From the NCBI RefSeq assembly GCF_052425735.1, contig NC_135767.1:19220001-19284000 (forward strand): a DNA stretch of 64,000 nt, written 5' to 3'. This DNA is from Oculina patagonica (taxonomy: Eukaryota). Shown piece by piece: positions 46,713-55,155 of the stretch. The translations under genes and the position numbers were made by a program. The notes beneath the pieces were generated by a model, which was not told the origin of the DNA, made no database searches, and saw only the letters and a program-made list of their open reading frames with translations. Numbering within the stretch: position 1 is the first letter of the stretch; the number at the start of each line of letters is the position of its first letter.

Positions 46713-48653
46713 TCTCTCCATGGGTAATCAGGCCAAGGCGTGTTCGTAAAAACAGTCCACTATCAAGTCACACTTCCAAGAGACAATTGTGATCGAGGAA
46801 TGGATTTTCAGTTGCTTCCAGCGGACAATCAAACCAAAAACGCAAAATATGATTGTGTACTGACCCTGTATAAATGATGACAAATTGAATGTGTACGAAG
46901 TAGAGAACGGAGCCCTTTCCGTTTCGGTTAACCCAACTATATTTACAGGTAACGAGGTCTCAGTTGACCTAGATTTGTAAAAAAAATATTCAGTGAAAAC
47001 TGCTTTGTATTTGATTCAATGTACACTTGTATGAAACTTTGCACAACCGGGTTTAACCGTTCTTGGGACACTAACTTTATATTATCATGTTGTAGTTATT
47101 TATAAAGTTTCAGTCGACCTGAAACTTTTTATTTATATTTATTTCCAAAGTTAAGTGCGTATGTCATTTTATGTAGAATTGAGAAACTCTAGATCCCTAG
47201 AGAAATGGGGTAGGGGGCGAGTTTTATGGTCATTGTTTGCTTAGGCTTTTTTCGTTTCTCGTTCGACTATGTTTTTCAGGTAAACGTGCTTCTTCTTATT
47301 CTGCTAGTATTTGCACTCGCATAAGAAACCTCGCACAACTATTGTGTTGTAAACTGCAAATAAGAGGACATCATGTGAAAGGACAACAGGTCCATTTTAT
47401 GTATGTAAATCTAGCAAACACTTTTATCCACTTATTAATTGCAACTATCTCCGGATTCTACTGGTTTTATGTGTCACCTGTTCAAATCGCTATTTGTTGA
47501 ATACAATGTTGGCAAGACAAGCGTGTCTTAATCAAAACTAATAACTGATGATATAAAGTCCTTTCTGTTATCCAACATGTTGTAACATAAGTGCCGTATC
47601 CTAGGCCATCCATGTTTTGGGCGAGCTGGAATTAAGGTTACTAAGCTTAAACCAATTCCACATAACGTTAATTGCATAAAACAATATGCTTTCCACTGAC
47701 GATTTTAATGGGTTTTGAACTGTAGGAAATGGAGTTAAGTTAATACGCTATCAGAAAACGAGAAACACAGGTGCAGAAAATTGACGAGGCGGAAAGAATT
47801 GCCTTTGTTTTAACCTGCCAAATTATTTGACGCTTTTTTCAAAATAAACAAATAGCTTGGTCACTTTTTAGCAATTCACTGCAATAGACCAGTGTGTGAG
47901 AGGAGAAGTAATCAGCTGAAACGGGAATGTTCCAATAGTTTCTTACTTGCAATTTCCAACATAAATAGAACATGTTATTTGCTCTAAAACTCAGGATCAA
48001 ATTTTGGATGCATTTTCACGCCATCTGAGGGTTCACCTAGAACTCTCCTATAAAAGTGTGAGACCCTCTTGGCCTCTCAAAGTCAACCATAAGCCAAAAT
48101 AGCGGCTTTGCTAACAAGCAATTTGTCAAATCTAAAACGGTTTTATTAGAAATGCTCTAATTTGATGTAGCGATGTTTTAGAAGATAGAAAATAGTCTGC
48201 ATTTTGGAGTGGACTGTTCTTTAAATGTTGCAACTTTTTTGGAGCTTTGAAGAACGGTGTATAACTTTCCTTGAGATCACTGGCTGGCTTTACGTGGTCT
48301 TGAAGTTTTTTTAAACTGCACCTATAAAAAAAGTACAAAAATAAATTGATTTTAAGTGTGAATGGTGTTCAGCCGAGGGGATGGAGTTGAATTATTAAGC
48401 TTTAAGAAGAGCCAAAAACCACAGGTGCAGAAAATTAACTATTAAAGCGGGAAGAAATGGCTTTGTTTCAGCATCCCAAATTATTTCACGCTTTTTTCAA
48501 AATAGACAAATAGCTTGGTCACTTTTTAGCAATTCACTGCAATAGACCAGCGTGCGAGAGGAGCAGTAATCAGCTGAAACATGAATGTTCAAGTAATTTC
48601 TTACTTCCAATTTGCAACATAAATAAAACATGTTATTTGCTCCTAAAACTCAG

Positions 48654-48816
48654 CGCCAGCAGGCAGTGCCTGCGGCATTAGTATTGTTGTATGCGCGCGC
48701 ATGTTTTCGCGCCACATGTTCGGTATGTGCAATATGTCAGCCATCTTGGTTGCATTAAAAACTGCTGTTGAAGTTCTTTCGTTGTGACGTGCGTTCTTGT
48801 CTCTTAAACATTGGCG
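48654..48816 (+). repeat. 5' LTR
   Basis: CGCCAGC...ATTGGCG. Contains ATTAAA. Identical by eye to the 3' LTR. Confidence 0.93.
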
Positions 48817-48827
48817 TGGTGGCAGCG
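48817..48827 (+). other. Primer-binding site (tRNA-Leu type)
   Basis: TGGTGGCAGCG immediately follows the 5' LTR and is complementary to the ...CGCUGCCA-CCA 3' end of animal tRNA-Leu(AAG/UAG). Confidence 0.7.
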
Positions 48828-48979
48828 ACGATTAATCCACGTCCTCAAGAGCCTGAGTGTCGTCTCGCTGGTCCAAGCAACAACGAGTCTACCTATCCTA
48901 TGGTCGAGTGAACTCTGAACAGCCGTCTCATCGTAAGGAAAGTATAACTTCACTGTTCCTTACTGTTACTGTGTTAAAC

Positions 48980-54111: not shown

Positions 54112-54125
54112 AAGGTGAGAAGAGG
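54112..54125 (+). other. Polypurine tract
   Basis: AAGGTGAGAAGAGG, 3 nt upstream of the 3' LTR. Confidence 0.75.
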
Positions 54126-54128
54126 TTG

Positions 54129-54291
54129 CGCCAGCAGGCAGTGCCTGCGGCATTAGTATTGTTGTATGCGCGCGCATGTTTTCGCGCCACATGTTCGGTA
54201 TGTGCAATATGTCAGCCATCTTGGTTGCATTAAAAACTGCTGTTGAAGTTCTTTCGTTGTGACGTGCGTTCTTGTCTCTTAAACATTGGCG
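54129..54291 (+). repeat. 3' LTR
   Basis: 163-bp direct repeat of 48654-48816. Confidence 0.93.
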
Positions 54292-55155
54292 CAGGATCAG
54301 ATTTTGGATGCATTTTCACGCCATCTGAGGGTTCACCTAGAACTAACCAAGAACTTTGCCTCTCAAAGTCAATCATAAACCAAAATAGCGGCTTTGCTAA
54401 CAAGCAATTTGTCAAATCCAAAACGTTTTCCTTAGAAAAACTCTAATTTGTTGTAGCAATGTTTTAGTAGAAAGGAAATTTGCAATTTGGAGTAAACTGT
54501 TCGTTAAATATCGCAACTTTTTTTGTGCACCACCTTCTCACTGGCCATCCATTTTGTATGATACTTATAAAGAAGTCAGGGTAGCGAATTATTTAGTACA
54601 TATTATCACTTTGTGTTCAGAAACACTATTAATAAAAGCTTTTTTATGGCACAACACAGCTGAACACTTTATTTAAAGCTCTTTGATAACCTGAAAGTTA
54701 AAAAGGCGCCGTAAATAATTACTGGCCGGAAGGATACTGCTATTGAATCAGAAAAGAAATGAGATTGCACCAATTATGCAAGTGCAGATGGTCAGACCAC
54801 CTTAAAGCTCTCGTAATTAAATATTTCTATTTTCTTTTGGCAAGAAAAAGAGCTTTTCTTTTAGAAAGAGAACCTTTATTTTAGGTCAATCTTCCAGGTG
54901 GTCTATTTTAATTAAAAGTTACCTTTTATGGCCTCAACACGACAAATAGCTGATAGTTTTTCCTTTGTACGCTGTCATCGCCAGTCTTCAATAATCGGTG
55001 AAAGCAGTCCAAAATTAATCAATCAAACTTTGGTGACTCCACTTCCATGCAGAAGGCCAAACAAACAGAGCGGCGTTTGCTTCTTAAGATACCAAGCAAG
55101 AAATAGTCTGAGATATACTAAACTCGATAACAATCTTTGCTATCTAATATCGACA

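Follow-up and report, generated by a model that had tools for sequence, protein, structure and literature searches.

Long terminal repeat (LTR) retrotransposons of the Troyka group were reportedly described by Kapitonov and Jurka in Repbase Reports in 2008. Here we describe an LTR retroelement that very probably belongs to this group, from the stony coral Oculina patagonica (order Scleractinia). It lies in a stretch of 64,000 nucleotides (RefSeq assembly GCF_052425735.1, contig NC_135767.1, positions 19,220,001 to 19,284,000 of the forward strand), which is called the window throughout and in whose numbering all coordinates are given; the element and all of its features are on the plus strand.

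The main text of Kojima (2025, J Gen Virol, PMC12440569) attributes to Troyka target-site duplications (TSDs) of 3 bp, LTRs of 100-400 bp that begin with CGCCA in 573 of 603 cases and end with TGGCG in 522 of 603, and a single Gag-Pol with a CX2CX8-10HX4C zinc finger, without a tether, without a GPF/Y motif and without env in any of the elements. According to the same text the hosts are aquatic animals, with 17 species of Scleractinia among them, families are named from Mytilus edulis and Haliotis rufescens, and horizontal transfers, some of them between phyla, are inferred; the group is placed as sister to Gypsy, retroviruses, caulimoviruses and Loki/Odin together. Neither Oculina patagonica nor its assembly GCA_052425735.1 is mentioned in that main text. 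The Kuafuorterviruses of Gong and Han (2024, Virus Evol, PMC11673190) are the same lineage as Troyka; they are given in the main text of that paper as 5-6 kb long, with an IADD, VADD or LADD motif in the reverse transcriptase (RT), in 169 species of 11 phyla, and their viral nature is argued from domain architecture.

All the hallmarks of this lineage that we examined are present in the coral element. Its LTRs have CG...CG ends (CGCCA...TGGCG) and are flanked by a 3-bp TSD (CAG); with LTRs of 163 bp and a total length of 5,638 bp it falls within the published size ranges (LTRs of 100-400 bp, elements mostly of 5-6 kb). It encodes a single Gag-Pol in the order zinc finger, protease (PR), RT, RNase H (RH) and integrase (IN), with no env; the finger is of the form CX2CX8HX4C and the RT motif is LADD; tether and GPF/Y are both absent, and the host is an aquatic animal. 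Compared by published descriptions, Troyka and the Kuafuorterviruses show no defining difference from it. We conclude, with a probability of about 0.93, that the element is a full-length, structurally intact Troyka (Kuafuorterviridae) copy, inserted in an intergenic or upstream part of a tandem array of G protein-coupled receptor (GPCR) genes of the coral. A first-pass annotation, made from the letters of the window only, had already proposed a fit to Troyka, as a possible new family of a rare lineage already known, and this is supported. It had also called the lineage little-studied, which still holds for the biochemistry, the group itself having since been described in detail in the two papers.

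Because CG...CG ends and a 3-bp TSD are a published hallmark of the lineage, the coral copy adds an example to a known kind and does not establish another. It is at most a new member of a described lineage, its family may already be catalogued, and the knowledge of Troyka is unchanged by it. Its contribution is a further copy, intact and probably young, of a lineage in which the integrase works with 3' ends in ...CG and with a stagger of 3 bp.

Limits of the element and its target site

The complete element spans positions 48654-54291. With the LTR as query, BLAST on the window gave a pair of copies, the 5' LTR at 48654-48816 and the 3' LTR at 54129-54291, each of 163 bp and 100% identical to one another, and direct reading of the termini shows that both begin with CGCCA and end with TGGCG. 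A repeat finder reported the pair as a direct repeat of 164 nt, also 100% identical (48653-48816 and 54128-54291), the additional nucleotide being a G of the flank that happens to agree. The trinucleotide CAG stands on either side of the element (48651-48653 and 54292-54294, the right copy being read directly at the junction), and the filled site reads aaact-CAG-element-CAG-gatc. The span first proposed, 48651-54294, had the right locus and included both copies of CAG, which lie outside the element proper.

The limits were examined by searching the 400 bp of the left flank and the 400 bp of the right flank, each alone, against the window. The two sets of matches abut with an overlap of three bases at 47992-47994, 45110-45112, 63348-63350 and 39940-39942 (minus strand). 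Each of these four sites is empty and reads aaact-CAG-gatc, with a single CAG; in a fifth paralogous unit, at 57152, ATG stands in place of CAG. The TSD cannot be longer than 3 bp because the next outward base differs between the two sides, and its length is exactly 3 bp. The empty sites therefore fix the limits of the element to the base. These results confirm the CGCCA/TGGCG ends and the duplication of at most 3 bp that the first-pass annotation had deduced from empty sites in paralogous GPCR units. Its account of those sites needs one amendment: the nearest (47992-47994, plus strand) sits in a short local duplication, 658 bp upstream, and the others are in full units. The further suggestion that the integrase recognises its ends and staggers its cuts in an unusual way finds support in the two papers, which define the lineage by CG...CG ends and 3-bp TSDs.

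Since the LTRs are identical and the reading frame is unbroken, the insertion is probably recent. Both papers make the point, in their main texts, that LTR finders which require TG...CA ends and TSDs of 4-6 bp miss or mis-delimit such elements. With its empty sites located within the same 64 kb, this copy illustrates the point cleanly for annotation.

The Gag-Pol polyprotein

A single gag-pol open reading frame (ORF) of 1,646 codons plus stop occupies positions 48980-53920 (ATG at 48980, stop codon at 53918-53920), with no internal stop and no frameshift. Pfam finds the order PR-RT-RH-IN, all with modest scores, and no env or other supported ORF of at least 80 aa was found in the element outside gag-pol. 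The N-terminal region of Gag (aa 1-246, 48980-49717), presumed to be the capsid, is predicted to be all-helical, with a mean predicted local distance difference test (pLDDT) value of 71.9. It is followed by the CX2CX8HX4C zinc finger, located by a motif scan at aa 272-289 (49793-49846), and by an aspartic protease at aa 357-439 (50048-50296) with its DTG at residue 365. For the protease, the Pfam families gag-asp_proteas and Asp_protease_2 remain below cut-off, and a profile search of the PDB matches retropepsin-like chains of DDI1.

RT and RNase H together cover aa 697-1088 (51068-52243), as judged from Pfam (RVT_1 at aa 722-862; RNase H at aa 930-1043, with RT_RNaseH_2 at aa 930-1026) and from alignment with Ty3, and motif C of the RT is LADD (aa 813-816, 51416-51427). 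The closest solved protein is the RT-RNase H of Ty3, whose residues 634-1009 match aa 697-1088 of the coral protein in one contiguous match (376 versus 392 residues; E 1e-23, and 1e-30 using a family profile). Because the match is contiguous, the coral RT-RNase H has no tether domain. Between RNase H and the integrase, alignments reveal a C-X4-C-X2-C cluster at aa 1092-1100 (52253-52279), which shows no variation among 31 close relatives or in any of the 17 rows of a further alignment (A6) that includes the distant group discussed below. This cluster is unmentioned in the main texts of PMC12440569 and PMC11673190.

The integrase was delimited by its invariant residues and predicted structure to aa 1190-1530 (52547-53569), with H1212, H1217, C1247 and C1250 forming the HHCC set and D1279, D1336 and E1372 the DDE set. 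Pfam recognises Integrase_H2C2 at aa 1199-1251 as its only integrase family; rve gives no match in the element protein even at E<=10. A motif scan found no GP[FY] in the whole protein, and neither sequence nor profile searches found an integrase homologue in the PDB. For aa 1190-1530 AlphaFold predicts (mean pLDDT 72.6) an N-terminal HHCC domain made of helices, a core with an RNase H fold and a small C-terminal beta-barrel, with the D, D and E placed on the expected strand, loop and helix. The alignments used for structure prediction (A3 and A5) consisted of the window segment together with full-length proteins from the protein search. The best PDB matches of this model in Foldseek are integrases of retroviral intasomes (E ~1e-11, probability 1.0), and its predicted three-domain layout is like that of the foamy virus, lentivirus and alpharetrovirus enzymes. 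It differs from them in sequence, with 10-15% identity, and in the reactive 3' end of the element, ...CG, and its stagger of 3 bp.

The polyprotein closes with a proline-rich tail (aa 1531-1646, 53570-53917), at the end of which there is a short, conserved basic motif. Across 31 aligned polyproteins, R1629 and R1632 of this tail are kept in 90% or more and P1637 in all. Also invariant across the 31 are C272, C275, H284 and C289 of the finger, D365 and G367 of the protease, D815 and D816 of the RT, and the HHCC and DDE residues of the integrase.

With Ty3/Gypsy elements the coral element shares the PR-RT-RH-IN order and a Gypsy-type RNase H without a tether, in addition to having Ty3 as its closest solved RT-RNase H. 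Ty3/Gypsy elements have TG...CA ends and TSDs of 4-6 bp, a finger spacer of 4 and a YxDD motif, whereas the coral element has CG...CG ends and a TSD of 3 bp, a spacer of 8 and LADD. Their integrase core is recognised as Pfam rve and often carries GPY/F, and the coral element has neither; the integrase part of Ty3 is left unmatched by it even with the family profile. Two further groups were considered and rejected. BEL/Pao elements (Belpaoviridae) are marked by BEL-type protease and Gag Pfam families, and no BEL-type family is among the matches of the element protein. Retroviridae, Loki and Odin have a tether with a secondarily acquired RNase H, and their viral forms have env, all of which are absent from the element.

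Relatives in other animals

With a threshold of E<=1e-10, a protein search gave more than 1,093 relatives. Among the matches listed, the closest are 96% and 95% identical and come from ENA assemblies, and those with named hosts are from Acropora (86%), Montipora, Mytilus, Pinctada, Dreissena, Haliotis and Ptychodera, so that no host groups other than corals, bivalves, abalone and an acorn worm are named. The relatives share the diagnostic features of the coral protein. A finger spacer of 8-10 residues is present in 85 of 86 full-length relatives and the canonical X4 spacer in none; the RT motif is xADD in 120 of 121 family proteins, the relatives having LADD (90), IADD (28), VADD (1) or MADD (1); and only 2 of 117 have GP[FY] downstream of the DDE glutamate. 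The Acropora protein (P0004, from Acropora millepora) is 86% identical to the Oculina element over Pol. Oculina and Acropora belong to different scleractinian suborders, and this degree of identity could reflect horizontal transfer or strong constraint.

DNA of relatives was taken from long contigs and metagenomes and the junctions were read. In 12 related insertions with both LTRs and both flanks, taken from other assemblies, abalone and mussel included, all LTRs are of the form CGCCA...TGGCG, with one-base variants in three LTRs. Because these 12 independent insertions share them, the CG...CG ends of the coral element are not due to chance; TG...CA ends in other copies, which the first-pass annotation had named as the result that would overturn its reading, were not seen. 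Eight clean insertions, counting that in the window, have a perfect 3-bp TSD: besides CAG in the coral these are CTG at L003, L087 and L088, CAG at L086 and L089, AAA at L002 and CTT at L004 (Haliotis cracherodii). At L018 there is a tandem array and the 3' flank is absent. A polypurine tract before an LTR or a primer site after one at L011, L012, L013, L018 and L056 marks tandem copies sharing an LTR.

Troyka-like sequences also appear under bacterial and viral names. Scans of bacterial-genome and viral collections gave four extra Troyka-like loci (L091-L094) and one (L095), respectively, none of them with flanks. Contigs of this kind (P0039, P0044, L091-L094) are filed in metagenome-assembled genomes of Candidatus Thiodiazotropha endolucinida, another Thiodiazotropha, a cyanobacterium, Rubritalea and 'bacterium Ust_3', and L095 is filed as an IMG/VR viral entry. 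These contigs are most likely mis-binned DNA of host animals.

Alternative explanations

Several observations weigh against reading the coral element as an intact Troyka copy, or limit what can be drawn from that reading. The assignment rests on shared hallmarks and host range and not on a tree with reference sequences. The presumed capsid has no Pfam hit, and its best match in a fold search, a Copia capsid, is not significant (E 0.47). BLAST of the LTR found no further copy or solo LTR in the 64-kb window, and an exact look-up of the protein returned a single contig only (CM126644.1 of GCA_052425735.1). The age of the insertion is bounded only loosely by identical LTRs of 163 bp. Among the related insertions, the TSD of L010 matches at two of three positions, and L005 (Mytilus edulis), L014 and L048 have none; the lack of matching flanks at these three, despite good LTRs, may be due to recombination between copies or to assembly error.

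The best surviving alternative takes the name Kuafuortervirus literally and sees in the element the endogenous copy of an infectious reverse-transcribing virus. Viral nature is argued from domain architecture in the main text of PMC11673190, and the horizontal transfers inferred in that of PMC12440569 and the Pol identity between Oculina and Acropora millepora also speak for this reading. We nevertheless consider an infectious virus very unlikely: the element has neither env nor a supported second ORF of the minimum length considered, env is reported from no Troyka in the main text of PMC12440569, and nothing in the sequence is a sign of an extracellular phase.

According to a second alternative, the element belongs to a separate, undescribed lineage outside Troyka that has converged on CG...CG ends and a 3-bp duplication. 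In its favour, Troyka was compared by description and not by sequence, and the protein family is deep, with further relatives, at 31-36% identity, forming a second tier. Yet eight independent hallmarks agree with Troyka, and some of them, such as the finger spacing, xADD and the missing tether, are unrelated to integration. Relatives with the same ends and 65-66% identity come from Mytilus edulis and a Haliotis species, and the main text of PMC12440569 names Troyka families from M. edulis and Haliotis rufescens; the window element stands in the first tier of relatives, not in the second. Such convergence strikes us as extremely improbable.

That the element is an ordinary Ty3/Gypsy copy, with an aberrant junction or misread LTR limits and true TG...CA ends with a TSD of 4-6 bp, is hardly credible in spite of its Gypsy-like domain order, its Ty3-like RT and the TG that precedes CGCCA at both LTRs of L003, L005 and L088: the empty sites rule out misread limits to the base, the extra TG belongs to a CTG duplication on one side and a TTG spacer on the other, all 12 related insertions are CG...CG, and finger spacing, LADD, the missing GPF/Y and the silent Pfam rve all differ from Gypsy. 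A position of the RT inside Gypsy, the other outcome that the first-pass annotation had considered fatal to its reading, is not indicated either: the RT scores 86 bits to the sole solved Ty3 RT, versus more than 750 bits among the relatives.

Non-coding signals

The primer-binding site (PBS) of the coral element is a sequence of 11 nt that starts with TGG and directly adjoins the end of the 5' LTR (48817-48827). TGGCG followed immediately by TGGTGGCAGC was read in 52 of 65 junctions between LTR end and PBS among related loci. Across coral, abalone and mussel elements the 11 nt are almost unchanged and always adjoin the LTR. As to the primer tRNA, aragorn, run on the window and on all fetched loci, detected no more than two tRNA-Thr-like genes, which differ from the complement of the 11-nt PBS at 4 and 5 positions, and a scan with Rfam gave no match within the element. 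A tRNA-Thr(GGU)-like sequence is present elsewhere in the window (27297-27372; 30.6 bits against an Rfam threshold of 29), and a similar tRNA-Thr-like sequence lies beside a Troyka-like element on a coral metagenome contig (L077, 273-346). The tRNA-Thr(GGU)-like sequence may represent a tRNA gene, or else a repeat derived from a tRNA.

At the other end of the element, directly before the 3' LTR, there is a polypurine tract (54112-54125) followed by the spacer TTG (54126-54128), the two together covering 54112-54128. The spacer ahead of CGCCA is 3 nt long in 33 of 62 junctions of related loci, and TTG (15), TCA (11) and CCA (4) account for 30 of those 33. The main texts of PMC12440569 and PMC11673190 contain no discussion of the PBS, the polypurine spacer or target preference.

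Within the LTR a block of 9 nt (48740-48748, with its second copy at 54215-54223) is invariant in an alignment of five LTRs from divergent related families (A4), in which the mean column identity is 74%. Apart from this block, the LTRs of these families share little outside their termini. The block is possibly a core promoter element.

Integration model and possible target choice

The anatomy of the element, its limits and its TSD were read from the DNA, and the steps of its life cycle are proposed by analogy with other LTR elements. According to this model, the 5' LTR would drive transcription and the transcript would be translated into the polyprotein, which the protease would cut and whose Gag would form particles. 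Minus-strand synthesis would be primed by a tRNA and plus-strand synthesis by the polypurine tract, yielding a linear DNA with two LTRs. The three-domain DDE integrase of retroviral type would then attach 3' ends in ...CG, where other elements usually have CA, to phosphates of the target separated by 3 bp, and the host would repair the gaps, leaving the 3-bp duplication.

The 3-nt spacer, the PBS adjoining the other LTR end and the 3-bp stagger, taken together, suggest an integration geometry built on trinucleotides, in which 3 nt are possibly removed at one end. A second regularity was seen in the target sites themselves. In six of the eight clean independent insertions (the window, L003, L086, L087, L088 and L089), which represent several families and hosts, the duplicated trinucleotide is CAG or CTG, against a chance expectation of ~3% (binomial P ~2e-8). 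CAG or CTG also occurs in 3 of 12 unpaired junctions. Troyka integrases may thus prefer targets of the palindromic class CWG; the word 'preference' is absent from the main text of PMC12440569.

A distant group of longer polyproteins

When cluster representatives were searched exhaustively, a distant group of proteins was seen beyond the core family. At the step below that family, the identity of full-length matches drops from 60% to 42% and their score from 1,251 to 754 bits, and below the step there are polyproteins of 1,700-2,170 aa that are 31-36% identical to the coral protein over the whole of RT-RH-IN. Thirteen of these were aligned (P0296, P0303, P0307, P0310, P0313, P0314, P0318, P0323, P0332, P0335, P0338, P0344 and P0348). 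In 12 of the 13 motif C of the RT is xAD[G/S/Q/A], with the second Asp replaced; the exception is P0338, in which M occupies the position of the A. The spacer of their Gag finger is 14-18 residues, and the integrase residues and the C-X4-C-X2-C cluster are kept. All members come from metagenome contigs of 6-13 kb. From these sequences, the group may represent a branch basal or sister to Troyka, perhaps an undescribed one.

Both the CWG pattern and the xAD[G/S/Q/A] group are side observations that may be new. The combined proposal, that Troyka targets are chosen by sequence or by a trinucleotide geometry and that the deeper sister group is an undescribed branch, is tentative, and we think it somewhat more apt to fail than to hold.

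Genomic setting

The element is inserted in an intergenic or upstream region within a tandem array of rhodopsin-family GPCR genes. The next gene downstream that was recognised, by its ORF and its paralogs in the array, is a rhodopsin-family GPCR gene at 54928-56103 on the plus strand. The element, which has the same orientation, ends 636 bp before this ORF and could, judging by position, influence the gene.

The region upstream of the GPCR gene has itself been duplicated locally: positions 47729-48240 correspond to 48381-48653 plus 54292-54523, at a spacing of 658 bp and with 83-89% identity, and this short duplication carries the nearest empty site. Beyond it, the window contains at least five more GPCR units, on both strands. 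Farther upstream, at 16569-19558, two ORFs with RING and NHL-repeat domains are probably exons of a TRIM-like gene.

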